From the NCBI RefSeq assembly GCF_006345805.1, contig NC_042997.1, positions 2,542,001 to 2,606,000 of the forward strand: 64,000 bases of DNA, read 5' to 3'. This document shows, one piece after another, positions 1-54,669 of this stretch. Source of the DNA: Octopus sinensis. Its lineage: Eukaryota. A program made the position numbers and the translations under genes. Position 1 is the first letter of the stretch. The number at the start of each line of letters is the position of its first letter. The notes under the pieces are model-generated. The model saw only the letters and a list, made by a program, of their open reading frames with translations, had not been told where the DNA came from and did not search any database.

Positions 1-14
1 TACAGGAGTCAAAT

Positions 15-95
15 ATAAAGATTGACACTATTGTTATCGGAGAATTGGGTTCAATACCACCCACCCTGAAAAACAAAATATGGAAACCTTAAAAA
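15..95 (+). mobile_element. Possible decayed 3' fragment of an RLE-type (R4/Dong-like) LINE
   Basis: Translates KIDTIVIGELGSIPPTLKNK, resembling the VIVGALGMIK motif near the C-terminus of the element at 4935-8367. Very short match. Confidence 0.3.
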
Positions 96-2569
96 TACTC
101 TACACTCTAGATGCATTGATGTAGTTGAGGAAGGCCTGCCAAGTGCGCTGATAAAACATAGTTGGTAAAAGAAATAGAAAATTTCGCTGAATATGCTGAG
201 ACGCAGATGGCTTTTACCATTATGAAAGCAAATATAGGGAAGCGGTATAAGATAGGTAGTAATAAGAAATGCAACTGAACCATACTTTTTCCATGGTTAC
301 TGACTGAAAGAATATAACACATTTCCGTGAAACATATTGATAAATCTAAATGAGTGTATTTTAACGTATGATGTAACAATGTGGTTGCCTGCTATTGTAA
401 GACAAATAGAAAGGAAACGTTGCTTGATATCTCCGACTAGTTCCGGGTGTATAACTTGTGTGAAATCTCTTAACTGTGAACGTTGTGGAAAAAATATGCA
501 AATATGTATATATGATATGTTCAATGTGTGATGGACAAAGAAAGTGTCTGAAAGTGAGGAAAGAAACGAAAAGCCAATAAAAGATCGATAAGATAGTCTG
601 AATAAGTGGAAGAAGTAGAACGGCTAATTCATTGAGTGTGAGGATCGATAAAAGGAAGGTATATCAATCACGTTTTGCCAAAAATCTTCAAAATCTCGAA
701 GAAAATTCAATGTCTGTTAGAAACTGAATTTCAACATCGGGAAGTATAATTAGCCTATGTCTAACAAATTTGACAATTATTCTTAACAAGCTAATGAACG
801 ACATTTACTCAGGAAAAATAAATCCATTTTCATGAGAAAGTTTAAGCTTTATGGAAAGTACAATTATCAACTAGATTTCCTGTAAGAATATCTATAGGGA
901 AATCGGGATGACATTTGAAAATTAGAAGATTTCTTTGACAAAAATAAAGCATGAAAACATCATAATTACTGAAATGGATCTAGATAATGCCTCGAATATT
1001 AAATCCTGAAATGTGTGTATCTCGGATTACTAGCAGATGATAAAAGCAAAATTGTTCAAATACAAGAAGCCCTTGGCAAGCTCTCACTTTATACAACCTT
1101 CGTTTAAAATGCAAATGGATTTGCCAGTAGTTTACAAGCGATGTATACCCACTTATAAAATAGTGACGATGAAACACTGAGAGGCAAAATGAGGAATTTA
1201 AGAATAAAAATATAAAACCTAGGATAAGAATATTTACACTCAATGGGAATAGGCAACCCTAATCCAATGTAATCCATTTATACTAGAAAAAGCAGAGAGT
1301 AAGGGACAAATAGAGTGAGAGAGAGAGAGAGAGAGAGAGAAAGATAGAGAGAGACAGGGTTTACTAATATAAAGTCTAGAGTTCTAGAGAAAATATTTCC
1401 TAGTTAGTCTTAAAGAGGTGATAATTAGTTGATATAATTACAGTGTTAATGAGATCAAATTAAAATAAATAGAGAGATGTAGCGAAAAAGAAGCAAAACT
1501 TCCAAGTAAAGTTTCTCCATTCAGTGTTTGCAGAAATGCATGCAATAATGTCTCACATGTCGAAATGAGTTTGTTTAAAGAGAAGAATTTTGAAGGAAGA
1601 GATCAAGGAAATTATTACAACGTCATAGAAAATAAAACTGAAACGTAAATTGGATTCAGAGAATGATATACATTATTTTAGAACGTACGATAATAGAAAT
1701 GATATTATAGCTCATCTTGCATCAGACGACTTACAGTTAGACCCAAATCAGTACAAATGCTTTGGTATGCTAATACTTTAAGTTTTCTATGAGATGTTTC
1801 GTTGTGCATGCACAGAAAAGTACTATGTTCACTGTACGGTACGGAATAAGAAATCATGCCATTGGAAACACTAATGCAAGTTTATCTAGCTTTTGTATAT
1901 AAACTAGAAGAAGATAGAAATAAAATCCGGACAGTGAAGATGTTGATAAAATTGCTGAGTCGAATTTGAGTGTCATGGTCATCTGATAGTGAAATCAAGA
2001 AGCAGAATATTATACCAAGTTGAGGTATGAAATTTTGGATACAAGACATTAGAAAATCCATGTACCTGCCGGTTATTATTGAGCCTTCCTAAGTCCCACT
2101 AAAAAGCAGTCTGAAATTAAACTTTGTGAAGATTGATCTTAAATTGCTGAGGTTAGATATTGTGCAGAAAGCCTCTTTATTTCTACAAAATACCCAAGGA
2201 TGTCTTCAATACGAAAGTAGAAAGAGTATTGTTTAACAGCATAAAGGCCCTACACTAGAAGAGTTTAAAACTAGTTGTTAGACCCCGGAGTGAGATGCCG
2301 TGTAACATAAAATCACGTAAAACTATGTATACTACGTGTCGTCACGAAGAAGAGAAGAATTTATGACAACATAAAGAACATGCTTGTTCTTGCCTGTTAT
2401 TTTACGTGTATTTCACTTACGTCACTAAGGGAAGTTATGATTCGAATGAAGAGATATATATATAACGAAACTGAGAGGAAGTGGAGAAAGGGAAACAAAG
2501 AAAGAAATGGGAACAGAAACGGAAATCGTGAAAGAAAGGGAGAAGGTCTATAATATTTGATACAAAGAG

Positions 2570-2885
2570 ATAGGTAGCTAGGATGATAGGTAGATAGATA
2601 GACAGACGGATATATATATTAGTATGTAGTTATGCATGTATGTATGTAGGTAGGTAGGAAGGTATATAGGTAGGGAGGTAAGTAGGCAGGTAGGTAGGTA
2701 GATAGGCAATGAGGCAGGTAAGTTGGAAGGCATGTAGTTAGGTAGGTAGATGGGTACGTAGGTAGATAGAATAATAGATATGTAGGTAGATAGACAGACA
2801 AATAGAGTGATGAGGTGACAAACAGATTTATTGCCTGATTGATTGATTGACTGATGGATTGATGGATTGATTGATTGATTAATTG
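2570..2885. repeat. Compound tetranucleotide microsatellite (GATA/GGTA/TATG/GATT)
   Basis: Direct inspection of degenerate tetranucleotide arrays. Confidence 0.9.
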
Positions 2886-3331
2886 GTTGATTGCTTTTTC
2901 CCTTCAGTACTGTTTACGTGGATTTTCACATCAGCATAACAATCAAATCTTTCAGAAAAATATACAATTTCATCATACAATTTTCAAAATAACCGTTGGA
3001 TCCTCACGGGTAGTTCTAATTATTATTATTATCGATAAGTATACATGCTTAATTTGTTTTCTGTTTTCTGAAGATGATAAAATGAGACCCATTCCAGCAC
3101 TGAAGCTAAAGTTGCCACGAAATTTGTGGGTGTCTTCATTAATATTTCGAAATTCGTATGTAAGTTATCAAAATGAGATCAATTACAGTAATTATATTTT
3201 ATTATTGCTGTTATTTTGCTATTTTTCTTATTAGGAGTATTTATTAGGTTTAGGACAAATATTTAAATTAAATGTGTAATATTCATAAGTAGACATTTAT
3301 GTCAATGAGTGAAACAAAAATGAATATTTAC

Positions 3332-4554
3332 CTTATAACTGACGGTGCTGTTTTCTCAATTTGAAGACATGTGTATCTTGGGTAACATCCATTCTGGAAC
3401 AATTGTAAAAGAACATCACTATCTGGTGTACTTTTACCTTTGGCAACCAGGCAGTGAAACATCCCAAGAGTTTGAATAGAGATTTGGTAATGTGTGATAT
3501 TTATGGAGAGTTGCTTATTTTTTTTCATGCTTTGCACCCAAGTGCTACGCAAGCGCTCAGAAAACGGACATAATTTAATTACGTCTTGACGACAGTCTCG
3601 ACATGAATTTGAGCAATGTTGGCGATACCCTGAATCACAAAACTGCACGTATTGTGCGCAATCTTTGAACTCGTCGGCGCAGGTTGTTGACACCACGTAC
3701 TTATCAAGTTTCAATTCCAGATACATTTTCGTTTGAGTAATTTCTTCCCCAGTGTCACAGACAGGCACCATGAATAAAGCTGCGGTTTTGATTTCATTAA
3801 CAGGTTCTTTTACACGTAGAGACCAGATATGGTCGCGTCGATTTTTTTCTCGAAGAATGATGAATCTGAACGGGCCTTCATTCCAATGTGCAAGACAATA
3901 TAATTTCTGTTTTACTTCCATATTTAAATCTTTGTGTATACAAGCCTTCGTTCTAAAATGAATCATCATACCTTCTCCAGATTCACATTCACTTTCTAGC
4001 CTAATAGGAACTATTTCTTCACGGCATAGCGCAGACCCACTGCTATCAAACATTTGTAAATTGTAACCCCCTGAGAATGGGCAGCTAACTTTGTGCTCAA
4101 GTAGTTTTTCTAGCAGTACTAATGGCCACATATCTAACATTAACGTATTACAAAGATCTGGATAATTCGTTTTAGATATTTCTGATTGTTTTAGCTGAAC
4201 AATGATTTCACCTCGACGCAAGAATTCCATACAAACATAACTGGTCGTATGAGCAATTTCTATGTGAGATGCTATATATTTACCGTTAGGGAACTCTTCT
4301 ATACATTTTCTTTCGTATCGTGTACATTGTCGATCACGACAACTACTAGCTTTCATAATACCATCTTGAAAGTACGCCACAAATCGGTCACCTTTTTCGT
4401 AACCTCGTACCCAAGCATTCTGCTCCGTGTGCATAAAACTGGGGAATTTGCATTCGGCCGACGTCACCCGCAGCACAACTGCCACGGCTAGAACGAGGCC
4501 AGTTTGTAGCCATAATAGCACTTCAAAAGCCTTCGTCGTCATGGGAACACGCAT
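3332..4554 (-). CDS. Large coding exon of an uncharacterised secreted or cell-surface cysteine-rich multidomain protein: signal peptide, two DUF7043/DUF7042-like modules, ShKT domain, start of a further module. Gene incomplete in the window.
   Basis: 417-aa open frame (3328..4581) with normal composition in otherwise ORF-poor DNA. Minus-strand acceptor TTCTTTTGTTTTACAG|AAA at 4585/4584 and donor ATAAG|GTAAAT at 3332/3331, so the exon is 3332-4584 (1253 bp); the ORF's TAA stop lies inside the donor, so the protein continues in a downstream exon. First ATG at 4554 (second at 4542) is followed by a hydrophobic stretch VLLWLQTGLVLAVAVVL and a T-S-A cleavage-type site. The DUF assignment rests on recalled motif similarity (CxFP..W, SCPFxGxY, CLAxWxEG, GCxxxYxC), not on a search. 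Confidence 0.88.
3592..3681 (-). other. ShKT (ShK toxin-like) six-cysteine domain within the CDS
   Basis: CADEFKDCAQYVQFCDSGYRQHCSNSCRDC (ORF aa 301-330) has spacing C-x6-C-x6-C-x7-C-x3-C-x2-C with Asp at position 3, matching the ShKT consensus. Confidence 0.8.
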
Positions 4555-4735
4555 CCGATTAACAACCTTAGTGACAGGCACTTTCTGTAAAACAAAAGAA
4601 ATATAAATATTATTCAGAGTGCATCATATAGCATTAACAAAGTTGTGTAATATATAAGAAAAAACCCTAAAAATACATTAGTAAACAAATCTCTTACAAA
4701 GTATCCAAAATCTTTTATTGTATATAACACAATAG

Positions 4736-4740
4736 TAATA

Positions 4741-4799
<59 letters not shown>

Positions 4800-4934
4800 T
4801 AATAAAATACTGCTGTGACTACACATAAAACAATATCATTGATGATGATGGTGATGGTGATGATGATAATAATGATAGTAATAGTAGTGATAATAATAAT
4901 AGTGATAATAATGGTGATGATAATAACAATAATA
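4736..4934. repeat. (AAT)n and mixed (GAT/AAT)n microsatellite forming the 5' flank of the Dong-like LINE
   Basis: Pure (AAT)n at ~4736-4804; degenerate GAT/AAT array at ~4841-4934 abuts the element start. Confidence 0.95.
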
Positions 4935-7900
4935 AGCCGGCTACAGCTGCTATAATGGTACGATTATAATTGTAACGGCAATGATGGCCGTCTCCCCACG
5001 AGCCAATCAAAGCTCAAAAATGATAACATTAACATAGCACCAAAATGTTTTTGGAAACTAAAAGGAAAACTAAATCAGTATACCAAATCGCTTGTCCTAT
5101 GGTTAATCTGGAAGCGCGTATCCCAGGGAAGAGCCAGCCTGGGATTGAAAAGTCATCAACTGGCACAAACTCTTCTCCGAATACGGACATGGATGGTCAC
5201 TTGAACGGGAAATTCCCCAACTCGAGCCCTCCAAGTTTACCACCAGAATCACCACAGAAAGAAAAATGTAAGCGGAATAAATGGACCCGAGAAGAGTATA
5301 AAGAAGTAATATACGCTTATTACTATGCATTAGGTAGGCCACCTCAAGAGAGACACACCGCAAACTCTTACAGTATATGGAGAACATGGAATCAAGACAG
5401 TAGGCCCTATTTGGACGAGAACAAATTAGCAAATGTGAGGAGGGATATCCTTAGAAATAACAGACTCACAGACAGTGAAATAAGCGCGATCAAGCACGCA
5501 ACAGAAAATAACATAAATATAAGACACAAAGGAAATGAAGAATCAGATGAACAGAATAGCCCGCCACGAGGCTTAATTGAAAGACTGCCATCTGACCAAA
5601 GTACGCAAAGGCCTGAAGACACAAGAAATTATATTGAACCTGTTAAAGATAGCCAGGAAAATGATAAAACAAAAGTAACAGAAGATCTCGCATTTGCTGA
5701 AGAACACAGAGAGTCTATGGCAGAAATGAGGCAGAAAATCCTGAATACGCTTGAAGGTGTAAGACATACAAGTATGAATGATAGAGAACCACTTCATAAA
5801 CTCTCAAATACAAACCAAAATAAAAAAAACAAATCAAAATTGGCAACTATGTAACAAATAAAATAATACAAGAATTGAAACCTGATTTTACTGAGTTAAA
5901 TGAAATTAGTTACGCTTCTGCTAGGGCAATTGAAACAAGCTGTATGCCCCCGAAAAAACAAAGAAAACCAAACCTGGGAAGAAATCAAACGTGGAGAAGT
6001 AAAATTGAAAAAGAGATTGAATTTATGAGAGGGGAAATATCAATATTAAATGAACTAATAAGTGGAAATGATGTAAGATCCAGAACAGGAAGAAAGATGA
6101 AGAGAAAATTTGGATCCTCACCTACAGAAGAACTGATATCAATAAAAGAAACGCTGAAACACAAAGTCAAAGCAAAAGCCCAAAGAATACGAAAACTTGA
6201 GAAGAGAAACAAGTTTTAAAAGCAAAATAAGCTGTTCACATCCAATGCCAAAAAATTCTACAGAGAAATAGGGAAGGAGAAAGTAACCGTTAAAGACGGA
6301 AGAAGTTCAAAACTTTTGGAAAAGGATTTGGATTGACATGAAGACGTACAACATAAATACAGAGTGGATTATACAAACGGAAGGATCCTACCAAAATTTA
6401 CAACAACAAGCATGAGAAGACATCACAATAGCAGACCTAAGAAAGGCACTCACGAAGGCCCATAATTGGAAATCCCCTGGTAAAGATAGTGTGCCGAATT
6501 TCTGGCTCGCATCGCTCCCATACGCACACGGTAAGCTAGTTCAGCTGCTCAATGGAATTATGAGAGACCTAAAGAAAACACCTGAATGGTTAGCAAGTGG
6601 TATTACTTACCTACTCCCAAAGAATAACGAAACCAACCATCCAAAAAACTATCGGCCAATAACCTGTCTATCCACCACGTATAAAATCCTAACATCTATC
6701 CTGGCGGAGAAAACATATATATTCATGGAGAAGAACGATATTTTCCCCATTGAACAAAAAGGGTATCGCCGAGGCCCATACGGATGCAGAGATAAACTGT
6801 TAATTAATTGTATGATCCTTGAGAACTGTCACAACAAGCGCAGAAATCTCAGCTCCGCATGGATTGACTATAAAAAGGCCTTCGACATTATACCGCATCC
6901 ATGGATCTTGAGATCTCTGGATATCTTCAAAATTTCCCCTGTGATTTCAAGCTTCCTGAAACACAATATGTCGTTGTGGAATACGAATCTCCAATTATAC
7001 CACTCTAATGGAGTACTTGCCTCAGAGAACATAAACATCAGCTGTGGGATTTTTCAAGGTGACTCACTTTCACCTCTAATATTCTGCATAGCCCTAATAC
7101 CCCTTACAAGTGAATTAAACAGAACAGGGTATGGGTATAAAATTGCCAATAAAAAAATAAGCCATCTATTTTATATGGGTGACTTAAAACTCTATGGTAA
7201 AGACGATAATGAACTTGAAGGCATATTGCGCACTGTGAAAGCATTCAGTGATGACATCGGGATGGAGTTTGGGCTTGAGAAGTGTGCCAAGACCGCTTTC
7301 CAGAATTTGCTATTGATCTCGTGCAGGATACCCAAACTGAACCACCCGAGGGAAGTACGGCAGCTATTGTTGCAAAGAAGGTGAAAATAATGGCAACGGA
7401 AAAAAGCGCACAAGCATTTGGCTGATAGGTGGGAGGAGAAACCTCTGCACGGCAAATATGTGGCCCGTAGCAAACAAGCTGATGTTGACCAGAAGCAAAC
7501 CCATCAGTGGCTACGGAGCTCAGGGCTAAAAGCAGAGAGCGAAGGTTTCATCCTGGCTGCTCAAGATCAAAGCCTATTCATTCGGAACTACCAGGCCAAT
7601 GTGATGAAAAATGGAGCAGACCCAAAATGCCGATTCTGCAACGACATGATTGAAACAGTGGACCACCTAATGTCTGGATGTAAAGTCTTAGCACCAGTGG
7701 AGTATAAATTAAGACATGACAGAGTTGGCCAATATCTACACTGGCTAATAAGTCGGCATTACAATATCAAAACTGCCGACAAGTGGTATAATCACCACAC
7801 TGAAGCTGTAACTGAAGGAGAAAATGTAACGATTCTGTGGGACTTTCCAGTACATACAGACCGAACCATCAAAGCCAATAAACCGGATATAGTTGTGAAA

Positions 7901-8367
7901 GACCAACACAATAAAGTTTGCTTATTGATCGACATGAGCATCCCCTGTGATCATAATATCTCGGCGAAAGAGCTTGACAAGCTTAGAAAATATAAAGACC
8001 TGCTCATTGAAATTGAGAAGATGTGGCATCTCAAGGCGGTTACAATACCAGTGATCGTAGGAGCACTAGGAATGATCAAGAAGGGAACCGAAAATTATAT
8101 GAGAATAATCCCTGGCTTACCATCCCTGCAAGAAGTGCAAAAGATTGTCTTAACTGGTACATCACACGTATTGAGAAGATCATTATCGATGTGAGAACTA
8201 TTACTACCCATATATTTTAATTTAACTTTATTTCTTTAAAGAAAAAAGAATGAACTAACTAGTGAGTTTAGTTTAATGGCCTACCAATGTATACTATGAG
8301 TTTCTTTGCCCTAGGAGTCGGGTAGACACTCGGAAAGAAATAGAAGCAAATGTGAAAGACGAAAAAA
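4935..8367 (+). mobile_element. R4/Dong-clade non-LTR retrotransposon (RT plus C-terminal restriction-like endonuclease), near full length but inactivated
   Basis: ORF pieces 5045-5854, 5875-6219, 6491-7384 and 7418-8194. Motifs: N-terminal KWTREEYKEVIYAYY; RT NYRPITCL, WIDYKKAFD, GIFQGDSLSPLIF and FYMGDLKLY (YMDD changed to YMGD); CCHC knuckle CRFC..ETVDHLMSGC; RLE KPDIVVKD..LLIDMSIP..KLRKY; C-terminal IVGALG. 3'UTR ends in an (AAT)n tail. Carries stops, frameshifts and an apparent internal deletion near 7300. Confidence 0.92.
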
Positions 8368-8389
8368 TATAATAATAATAATAATAATA

Positions 8390-8432
<43 letters not shown>
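8368..8432. repeat. (AAT)n tail or target at the 3' end of the Dong-like LINE
   Basis: Direct inspection. Confidence 0.95.
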
Positions 8433-8433
<1 letters not shown>

Positions 8434-9072
8434 GTAAGGAGTATAACTCCAAACTTACAGGGGAAAATTCATTTTAGTATTAAACCAAATTTCACAATAA
8501 AAATATATATGTACGTAGTCTTTTTACTTATTATATTATGTTTATTAATTTTTTGGTACTTTTTGTGATCTAGATATATGTTTTATAATATATTTTATTT
8601 TCTCTATATGAATTTATGTCTATCATTGTTTGAATTACATAATAGTGTTTTTGCTCTAATTCATATATATATATATACACACATATATAGGCTAGACTTC
8701 TGTAAGGTAATCTGCGGTATTCAAACGTTGCGTTTACTTTAGACTGGATCCGTGATAAAACCTCTACAAACAACCTTTGTAACTTTAGGAGTAGTCAAAC
8801 TGGTAAACTTAATTTAGGTAGCTTCATATAATCTGTCAAGTGAAATAATAATAAACACGGTATTCAACGTGTCCAGTAGGAACATTTCATGTCTGTAAAG
8901 TAAAAGTTAGTTCAAATTAGTTATTTTTTTAAAGACCCGGTTTGTGCTGTTTTATATACATCCAGTTGAAAGAATTTTGAGTGTTATGAATCGGCATTAA
9001 GATTCAACTTAGTATACCATAGAATGCGATGATGCTTTAAATAAAGCTAAATAATTTCGAAATCAGAATTTA

Positions 9073-53752: not shown

Positions 53753-53876
<124 letters not shown>

Positions 53877-53890
53877 ATATATATATATAT

Positions 53891-54669
53891 TTCAGGTGAA
53901 ACTCTCGCGGCGTCCAACAACATCAGAGACTTGGGAGTAATTGTGGACAACAACGTAAGCTGGGCCACTCATATAAATACCAAAGTTGACATGCCCCGCA
54001 GAATGTGTTCCTGGATTCTCAGAACTTTCCAGTCGAGAGATATCCACACCATTATCCTTCTCTTCTCCACTTTTGCCCGACCCCACCTTGAATACTGTTG
54101 TCCACTGTGGTCTCCCCACACAATACAAGGTATCATAAAAGTTGAAGCACCTCAAAGGGCAATCACAAAAAAGATAGATGGCATGACAGGCCTCGACTAT
54201 TGGGGTCGACTAGAAAAGCTAAAACTCTATTCTCTCCAACGTCGTCGTGAGCGCTACATCATCTGCATGATGTGGAAAATATTCCATCAGCATTGCCCAA
54301 ATGATGTTGGCATCACCTTTAAGGTACATCCAAGGCTTGGGCCCCGTGCCATCCGCCCAAAACAAAAATCGCACTCTCATCTCATAACAACAATACGGCA
54401 CAATTATTTCACCTCAATTGACCCCGCTCTCTTTAACATTACACCAAAACACATTAAAACAGAAACTGACCCTATAGGGTTCAAGAAGTCTTTGGACAGA
54501 TTCCTTCAAGAAATCCCGGATAAACCCCCTACACCCGGATATGTCTCTGTAAACAATAACTCTCTACTTGAGTGGGCCATAGTGCCCAAATTCTGACTTG
54601 AAAGACTTCACCAGGTGGTGCTATTAAGTTAGACATGGCCTGGGCCAATAATGGCCGAAACCTATCAAA

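Follow-up and report, generated by a model that had tools for sequence, protein, structure and literature searches.

The window analyzed here is a stretch of 64,000 nucleotides of Octopus sinensis (contig NC_042997.1 of assembly GCF_006345805.1, positions 2,542,001 to 2,606,000 of the forward strand), and a conserved octopus gene with two coding exons has the first of them at positions 3332-4584 on the minus strand. The predicted product is an extracellular, cysteine-rich multidomain protein which, as judged by profile-profile comparison of family alignments, consists of a two-module unit duplicated in tandem long ago, in the order A-B-ShKT-A'-B', with the disulfide knot of the ShKT module as the ancestral connector. 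Judging from the layout of the orthologous C-termini, a glycosylphosphatidylinositol (GPI) anchor probably fixes the protein on the outer side of the plasma membrane. We hold the identity of the gene and its architecture, as described below, with high confidence.

The exon and its gene

The exon, its borders and the start codons in use comprise the following features:

3332-4584, minus strand: first large coding exon, 1253 nt, made up of a 30-nt 5' leader, codons 1-408 and two bases of a split Arg codon
4585-4601, minus strand: splice acceptor with polypyrimidine tract, tttcttttgttttacag, read from the DNA; the O. vulgaris model joins its upstream exon exactly here (...PKGK joined to KVPVTK)
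3326-3331, minus strand: splice donor GTAAAT, read from the DNA and matching the consensus
4552-4554, minus strand: start codon of the O. sinensis and O. bimaculoides RefSeq proteins (MRVPMTTK...)
4540-4542, minus strand: second in-frame ATG, the start of the cuttlefish model

The minus-strand open reading frame (ORF) at 3328-4581 encodes 417 amino acids (aa) and is by far the longest of this AT-rich, repeat-laden window. The acceptor reads tttcttttgttttacag/AAAGTG, which places the first exon base at 4584, and the donor reads AAG/GTAAAT, which places the last at 3332. The borders given in the preliminary description of this DNA, 3332 and 4584, are exact, and they enclose a single exon with consensus splice sites. 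The splice boundary at 3332 is corroborated by the cuttlefish gene, in which the same donor is used, and by the O. sinensis and O. bimaculoides RefSeq proteins, which run from ...SVIR directly into YRLGRS.... The ORF ends where it does because read-through of the donor yields AGG TAA, which puts an in-frame stop immediately behind the exon (3328-3333, minus strand), and this stop also accounts for database entries of 408 aa (octopus) and 404 aa (cuttlefish) that end in SVIR. Unspliced RNA would give a 408-aa product without an anchor; the 408-aa and 404-aa entries are either a short isoform or gene-calling artefacts.

The exon product starts at MRVPM and has 408 aa up to the end of the exon, which match residues 1-408 of the 662-aa O. 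sinensis protein LOC115219228 and residues 25-432 of O. vulgaris CAI9714987.1 with 100% identity. Two residues set it apart from O. bimaculoides LOC106881850, and its identity with the protein of the cuttlefish Acanthosepion (Sepia) pharaonis is 84%. An uninterrupted ORF, 100% identity between octopus species and the selective constraint described below rule out a pseudogene. An exact-sequence look-up of the 408-aa exon product returned no record. RefSeq labels LOC115219228 and LOC106881850 "uncharacterized protein", and the UniProt label of the O. vulgaris copy is "ShKT domain-containing protein". The protein is already catalogued and is no new kind of object, since RefSeq, UniProt and the Pfam families DUF7042-7045 already hold it or its modules. 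The term "uncharacterised" used in the preliminary description is apt in that the function is undescribed and no well-characterized family was matched among Pfam families and PDB sequences; it does not extend to the protein's records in RefSeq and UniProt or to its four modules, which Pfam covers.

In the cuttlefish, a 10-kb intron lies between the two coding exons of the gene (aa 1-404 and 404-657), and the boundary falls at the same codon as position 3332 of the window. In tblastn searches with full-length cuttlefish and mussel-like proteins, exon 2 left no trace in window positions 1-3331 and only exon 1 was matched; the remainder of the gene lies beyond the left edge of the window. Nor was the exon that the O. 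vulgaris model has upstream (MLFYENDRLCPKGK) found within the window. This model spans 128 kb and gives a protein of 461 aa, whose last exon of 29 aa falls at window positions ~845-931 (minus strand) and is not homologous to the exon 2 present in O. sinensis, O. bimaculoides and cuttlefish. Because the 29-aa exon is without a counterpart in any relative, the 3' end of CAI9714987.1 is almost certainly wrong, the model being truncated or mis-spliced, and a practical by-product of this work is that it needs revision on the basis of the 662-aa models of O. sinensis and O. bimaculoides. At ~845-931 the window reads NLLIFK where the O. vulgaris model has NFLMFK, and is not identical to that assembly there.

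Domain architecture and internal duplication

The exon product can be divided into the following parts:

4456-4554, minus strand: signal-peptide-like N-terminus, MRVPMTTKAFEVLLWLQTGLVLAVAVVLRVTSA, assigned by inspection, with a predicted cut before E-C
4138-4461, minus strand: module 1, DUF7043; predicted 7-8-strand beta meander, short helix and final strand; four conserved cysteines
3751-4092, minus strand: module 2, DUF7042; eight predicted beta strands; motifs CPFSGGY and RLESEC.GEG; invariant columns in the family alignments
3592-3681, minus strand: six-cysteine module of ShKT type, CADEFKDCAQYVQFCDSGYRQHCSNSCRDC, short and divergent
3332-3573, minus strand: first ~80 residues of module 3, which is of DUF7044 type and repeats module 1; the intron interrupts it, and exon 2 supplies the rest
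3493-3501, minus strand: N-glycosylation sequon N-I-T in module 3, read from the sequence

Domain residue numbers given here and below follow the 417-aa ORF. By inspection, the N-terminus (MRVPMTTKAFEVLLWLQTGLVLAVAVVLRVTSA/EC) has an n/h/c layout with small residues at -3 and -1. A hydrophobic stretch is present at the N-terminus of 100 of the 127 full-length relatives, and AlphaFold2 (AF2) modeled a helix over residues 2-27. Pfam assigned DUF7043 to residues 41-148 (E=2.3e-16, 60.5 bits) and DUF7042 to residues 164-277 (E=5.7e-10, 39.6 bits), both above the gathering score of 27 bits, in agreement with the earlier proposal that modules 1 and 2 are of the DUF7042/7043/7044 kind. The last ~80 residues matched DUF7043 at E=1.2e-5 and DUF7044 at E=0.0015. 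The DUF7044 match to this intron-cut module 3 scored 19.2 bits against a cut-off of 27, and 21.6 bits were reached with the full-length cuttlefish ortholog. The N-I-T sequon pointed out earlier is present at 3493-3501; it is kept in close relatives, but occurs in 18 of 98 sequences across the family. The initial view of this exon as part of an extracellular, cysteine-rich multidomain protein is supported. The complete protein has the order putative signal peptide, DUF7043, DUF7042, ShKT, DUF7044-type module, DUF7045-type module, Ser/Thr/Pro-rich stalk and C-terminal hydrophobic tail.

The internal duplication was assessed by profile-profile comparison of family sub-alignments with hhalign, which gave the following values:

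module 1 versus module 3: probability 98.2%, E=3e-14
module 2 versus module 4: probability 95.9%, E=6e-9
N-terminal half versus C-terminal half, 210 columns: probability 99.0%, E=6.4e-18
module 1 versus module 2: probability 0.2%, E=0.27

The two halves that flank the ShKT module are homologous; the protein is a tandem duplication, and the disulfide knot connects its halves. The suggestion that the last module repeats module 1 is thus upheld both by the DUF7043 match to its N-terminal part and at the level of the family.

The ShKT module

Six cysteines at residues 301-330 follow the pattern C-x6-C-x6-C-x7-C-x3-C-x2-C, which is the ShKT spacing, with 30 residues from the first to the sixth. When the octopus module was scanned alone, it gave a full-length match (positions 1-37 of 37) to the Pfam ShK family (PF01549) at E=0.027 and 15.4 bits, below the cut-off of 20.9, and ShK was absent from the Pfam matches when the whole exon was scanned. 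The octopus copy can be called an ShKT module because the family-level evidence alone rescues a copy below the threshold. Of the ShKT unit proposed in the preliminary description, the six-cysteine spacing and the family-level homology to ShKT folds stand, whereas the octopus copy by itself stays under the Pfam threshold.

In an alignment of 98 diverse full-length members, each of the six cysteines is at least 96% conserved. The strict six-cysteine pattern is found at the same position in 106 of 127 full-length representatives, most of the others having a shorter C2-C3 loop, and the six cysteines are invariant across the 109 modules that were extracted. The module is wholly absent in only 2 of the 98 aligned representatives (P0092 and P0133), while P0030 and P0078 carry a degenerate module with five cysteines left. 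Among the 109 isolated modules, 54 match Pfam ShK at E<=0.01, the best at 5.5e-8. A profile built from the 109 modules and compared with all PDB sequences matched only entries with the ShKT fold, at E 2e-4 to 5e-3 (chains 2lg4, 2mcr, 2k72, 5wcv, 6buc, 7l2g and 2md0); the kinds of protein matched are aurelin, the ShK domain of a filarial metalloproteinase, the ShK domain of MMP23 (2k72), anemone ShK homologs and a hookworm peptide. A chance cysteine pattern is ruled out by this conservation and by the restriction of the PDB matches to ShKT entries. On sequence grounds, the cephalopod copy is a short, divergent member of a genuine, ancestral ShKT module. The idea that the ShKT combination or insertion is special to cephalopods does not hold, given the conservation of the cysteines in the 98 sequences and the range of the named members, which are molluscs, annelids, nemerteans and a brachiopod.

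Beyond the cysteines, the conserved positions are structural, C-x-D-[ED] and C-x-[KR]-[ST]-C-G-x-C, and none without a structural role is kept throughout the family. A Lys-Tyr/Phe pair is the feature tied to channel block in ShK-type peptides. Such a pair is present in the C3-C4 loop of 10 of the 109 modules, and the octopus loop reads DSGYRQH.

The Pinctada protein P0093 (912 aa) has the module twice, which may come from two genes fused in tandem or from a genuine doubling.

Selective constraint

Between octopus and cuttlefish, the proportion of differing sites in the exon is 0.106 at non-synonymous positions (pN) and about 0.97 at synonymous positions (pS), giving a pN/pS of about 0.11. We used these proportions and not dN/dS because the synonymous sites are saturated. 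The exon is under strong purifying selection between the two animals. Its most constrained parts are the ShKT module, with 94% identity and a pN/pS of 0.03, and the signal-peptide region (4456-4542, minus strand), in which 29 of 30 residues are identical and pN/pS is 0.02. Venom components usually show diversifying selection, the opposite of the constraint seen in this exon.

The protein family and its taxonomic range

A profile of five members was compared with 1.84 billion representative proteins and retrieved 425 representatives at E<=0.001 (counted at 50% clustering), including 191 at E<=1e-30. Most of these are 600-800 aa long and collinear with the profile in one stretch of about 550-600 positions. 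All named clusters, about 20 in number, on which the taxonomic statement rests, are spiralian: cephalopods, bivalves (Crassostrea, Ostrea, Saccostrea, Mytilus, Pinctada and Ruditapes), gastropods (Physella, Pomacea, Nucella and Plakobranchus), a chiton (Liolophura), annelids (Capitella and Paralvinella), nemerteans (Lineus and Tubulanus) and a brachiopod (Lingula). Every named member is labelled "uncharacterized" or "hypothetical"; entries of the family include LOC111135921 (Crassostrea virginica), CAPTEDRAFT_227924 (Capitella) and LOC106152138 (Lingula).

A Pfam scan of 70 members found DUF7043 in all 70, DUF7044 in 44 (matches at E<=0.001), DUF7042 in 38, DUF7045 in 6 and ShK in 3. Pfam therefore already splits the family into four DUFs, DUF7042 to DUF7045 (PF23069, PF23070, PF23071 and PF23073). 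With 425 representatives, this conserved surface family would merit expression mapping and knock-down in a spiralian amenable to experiment.

C-terminus and probable membrane anchoring

In octopus, cuttlefish and other full-length proteins, the stalk that follows module 4 is predicted to be disordered. Beyond it, the 662-aa octopus ortholog ends in ...NRKNTYVITVMSVLFFLIPLVCVPA. A hydrophobic 13-mer lies within the last 60 residues in 120 of 127 full-length representatives; the last such 13-mer is followed by at most 6 residues in 108 of the 127, and by more than 12 in none. For this latter reason we conclude that there is no cytoplasmic tail. A signal peptide combined with a terminal hydrophobic stretch that lacks a cytoplasmic tail is the layout of a GPI-attachment signal. 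Bivalve tails, in addition, show textbook omega regions of small residues, e.g. ...ESGSCTNSAKFSLFLSSLFFILII.

The recovery of downstream exons had been proposed as a check for a transmembrane segment or a GPI anchor. The tails of the orthologs resemble GPI signals; exon 2 of the gene itself is not in the window. A freely secreted or matrix protein, as had been envisaged at first, is probably not what the gene encodes: in the full-length orthologs, the 662-aa octopus proteins among them, the chain closes with a Ser/Thr-rich stalk and a hydrophobic tail.

Predicted fold

AF2 models were built on shallow alignments (18 and 15 sequences). Block means of the predicted local distance difference test (pLDDT) were 79-95 for module 1, mostly about 80-93 for module 2, with a dip to 64-69 at residues ~171-190, and about 50-89 for modules 3 and 4; the ShKT stretch and the stalk were modeled without confidence. 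All four modules were modeled as successive beta hairpins, followed in module 1 by a short helix and a last strand.

No PDB sequence was matched by the beta modules, either with the single protein or with the family profile. In structural comparison of the models with the PDB by Foldseek, a probability of at least 0.9 (0.9-0.99) was obtained only for lipocalins (nitrophorins 1, 2, 4 and 7, OBP1 and a leukotriene-binding lipocalin) and for de novo designed 8-stranded barrels, the latter with template modeling (TM) scores of 0.56-0.60. The top-ranked row for the exon model was the two-domain, calycin-like AimA (PDB 6b7l). Rows for a sliding clamp, DDB1, laminin, neurexin and plexin were discarded as noise (probability <=0.2, TM about 0.1). 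The modules may be small meander barrels, which we take as a lead from the models and not as membership of the lipocalins; a sequence signal is absent. A literature search that joined ShKT, lipocalin-like and GPI found nothing relevant.

Possible functions

In the reading that we prefer, the protein would enter the secretory pathway, exchange its C-terminal tail for a GPI anchor and be displayed on the outer side of the plasma membrane. The four beta-meander modules, as weakly lipocalin- or calycin-like barrels, would hold a ligand or partner, and the ShKT module would be a rigid spacer or docking knot and not a potassium-channel blocker. We lean modestly toward this statement as a whole, that of a GPI-anchored surface binding protein with ShKT as the connector. 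Its component that the barrel modules might bind a ligand at the cell surface is drawn from the models and is tentative, on the doubtful side if taken by itself.

Several observations weigh against a GPI-anchored binding protein with a ShKT connector. The near-perfect conservation of the N-terminus is unusual for a cleaved signal peptide, an omega site is not obvious in the octopus and other cephalopod tails, and the anchor is deduced from the tail layout of orthologs only, exon 2 being outside the window. Over the ShKT stretch the AF2 pLDDT is 32-43, which does not confirm the helical fold with C1-C6, C2-C4 and C3-C5 disulfides for the cephalopod copy, and this copy is also below the Pfam threshold. 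With whole multi-domain models and not single modules as queries, Foldseek gave no PDB match at E<=0.001 for either model, and the lipocalin matches had E-values of 0.03-0.2, TM scores of 0.33-0.40 and root-mean-square deviations of 5.5-8 Å. Pfam searches up to E=10 returned no lipocalin family, and no lipocalin sequence signal or motif was found. In the literature searched, the family is without mention, whether by DUF7042-7045, by Pfam accession or by locus name.

The alternative that survives best is a cell-surface adhesion or recognition protein, in which the beta modules would be protein-protein interaction domains, as in immunoglobulin- or LamG-type receptors, and would bind no small ligand; GPI-anchored, it would act at cell-cell or cell-matrix contacts, for example in the nervous system or in epithelia. 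Such a protein would share the same extracellular, GPI-like architecture, and the duplicated two-module halves would fit a bivalent binder. The weakness of the lipocalin resemblance, with no Foldseek match at the threshold, also speaks for it, as does the presence of neurexin and laminin LG domains and of plexins in the low-probability part of the Foldseek list. However, these LG and plexin matches have a probability of <=0.14 and TM scores of about 0.1, and no adhesion-type Pfam domain was found in the exon product or in the 70 relatives. We consider adhesion or recognition rather unlikely.

An integral membrane protein would result if the terminal stretch were a true transmembrane segment or tail anchor, or if the N-terminal helix were an uncleaved signal anchor. 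This would be in line with the 29 of 30 identical residues in the N-terminal region, the long helices modeled by AF2 at both ends of the protein and the inconspicuous omega site of the cephalopod tails. Yet the hydrophobic tail ends 0-6 residues from the C-terminus in 108 of 127 representatives, with no basic stop-transfer or cytoplasmic segment, and the bivalve tails have textbook small-residue omega regions (ESGSCTNSAKFSLFLSSLFFILII). Moreover, cleavage of a signal peptide is suggested by the small residues at -3 and -1 and by the conserved Cys-x-Phe-Pro that follows. Integral membrane insertion is distinctly unlikely in our view, and GPI attachment is preferred.

The conservation of the ShKT module could also point to a membrane-tethered, endogenous toxin-like regulator, in which the module, displayed on a GPI anchor, would tune a potassium channel or another ion channel. 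There is a precedent in the ShKT domain of MMP23, which acts on Kv1.3, and the module profile does match the structure of that domain (2k72). The module is retained in nearly all family members and, with 94% identity and a pN/pS of 0.03, hardly varies between octopus and cuttlefish. Against such a role, the Lys-Tyr/Phe pair in the C3-C4 loop occurs in 10 of 109 modules only, no non-structural position is conserved family-wide, and the module is gone from two members and degenerate in a few more. Its position in the middle of the chain between large domains fits a connector. A channel-tuning function is improbable. If anything more improbable is its extension, proposed by analogy, to a spiralian surface system in which ShKT on a GPI-anchored four-barrel scaffold would regulate an ion channel or receptor as the ShKT counterpart of the Ly6 "prototoxins"; if true, the tethered ShKT scaffold would be a plausible evolutionary source of recruited ShKT venom peptides.

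Least probable of all is that the octopus gene encodes the precursor of an ShKT toxin secreted in venom or saliva. ShKT domains are indeed present in venom peptides and, among gastropods, in venom proteins of the CAP-ShKT and astacin-ShKT kinds (PMC6409789), and an unspliced transcript would stop after the exon and give a 408-aa secreted product without an anchor, but the gene encodes a 662-aa multidomain protein with a membrane-anchor-like tail and not a small knot-only peptide, members are found in filter-feeding oysters and mussels, a brachiopod, annelids and nemerteans, selection is strongly purifying and not diversifying, the pharmacophore dyad is missing, and the architecture is unlike the three classes to which the gastropod ShKT survey was confined, namely ShK-like, CAP-ShKT and M12-ShKT (PMC6409789). 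It is very unlikely that the protein is a toxin.

Neighboring elements in the window

A decayed non-LTR (long terminal repeat) retrotransposon at 5045-8194 (plus strand) lies directly 5' of the exon, in the upstream intron of the gene and on the opposite strand. It consists of four consecutive ORFs, with RVT_1 at 6491-7381 (E=4e-24) and zf-RVT at 7418-8191 (E=7e-4); its first two ORFs had no Pfam match. Just upstream of the exon there are an (AAT)26 microsatellite at 4731-4809 and a degenerate ATG/ATA-rich array at 4842-4935. The downstream intron contains (GTAG)33 at 2638-2769 and (GATT)17 at 2825-2893, and further microsatellites are (ATA)23 at 8369-8437, after the retrotransposon, and (AG)21 at 1312-1354. 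Elsewhere in the window, an ORF of 271 aa at 53781-54596 (plus strand) starts in a TA-rich microsatellite and has no Pfam match. From its sequence (…RDLGVIVDNNVSW…LEYCCPLWSP…) it looks like the C-terminal part of ORF2 of a long interspersed nuclear element.

Comparison with known systems

The octopus modules are predicted to be up-and-down beta meanders of ~8 strands, which weakly resemble lipocalins and calycins: the Foldseek matches to these reached a high probability but no significant score (E>=0.02, TM<=0.40 to natural lipocalins). Instead of one barrel, the family has four modules of two kinds. Lazarillo of the grasshopper is a GPI-anchored neuronal lipocalin, and the family would share with it the GPI linkage predicted from the tails.

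With MMP23, astacin-ShKT and CAP-ShKT proteins and aurelin, the family has in common the six-cysteine ShKT spacing and, in most members, C-x-D-E after C1 and the C-x-[KR]-[ST]-C-G-x-C end. In the family the ShKT module is internal, between homologous halves, and not terminal to an enzyme domain. The family also differs from other ShKT proteins in that the cephalopod copy is short and below the Pfam cut-off, and in having no conserved channel-binding dyad.

Among the Ly6 proteins, Lynx1 and Sleepless/Quiver are GPI-anchored knots of toxin type that act on receptors and Shaker channels. By analogy, the present family may likewise display a toxin-type disulfide knot on a GPI anchor. In contrast to the Ly6/uPAR prototoxins, which have the three-finger fold and a single small domain, it would have the unrelated ShKT fold and has four additional large modules.

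When compared with the DUF7042-7045 family, the octopus product is the same protein, with the domain order of all members, and the window holds exon 1 only. To this catalogued family our analysis adds the internal duplication with ShKT as its ancestral connector, the GPI-like C-terminus across the family, the resemblance of the modules to meander barrels, and the spiralian range of the named members together with the strong constraint on the octopus and cuttlefish copies.

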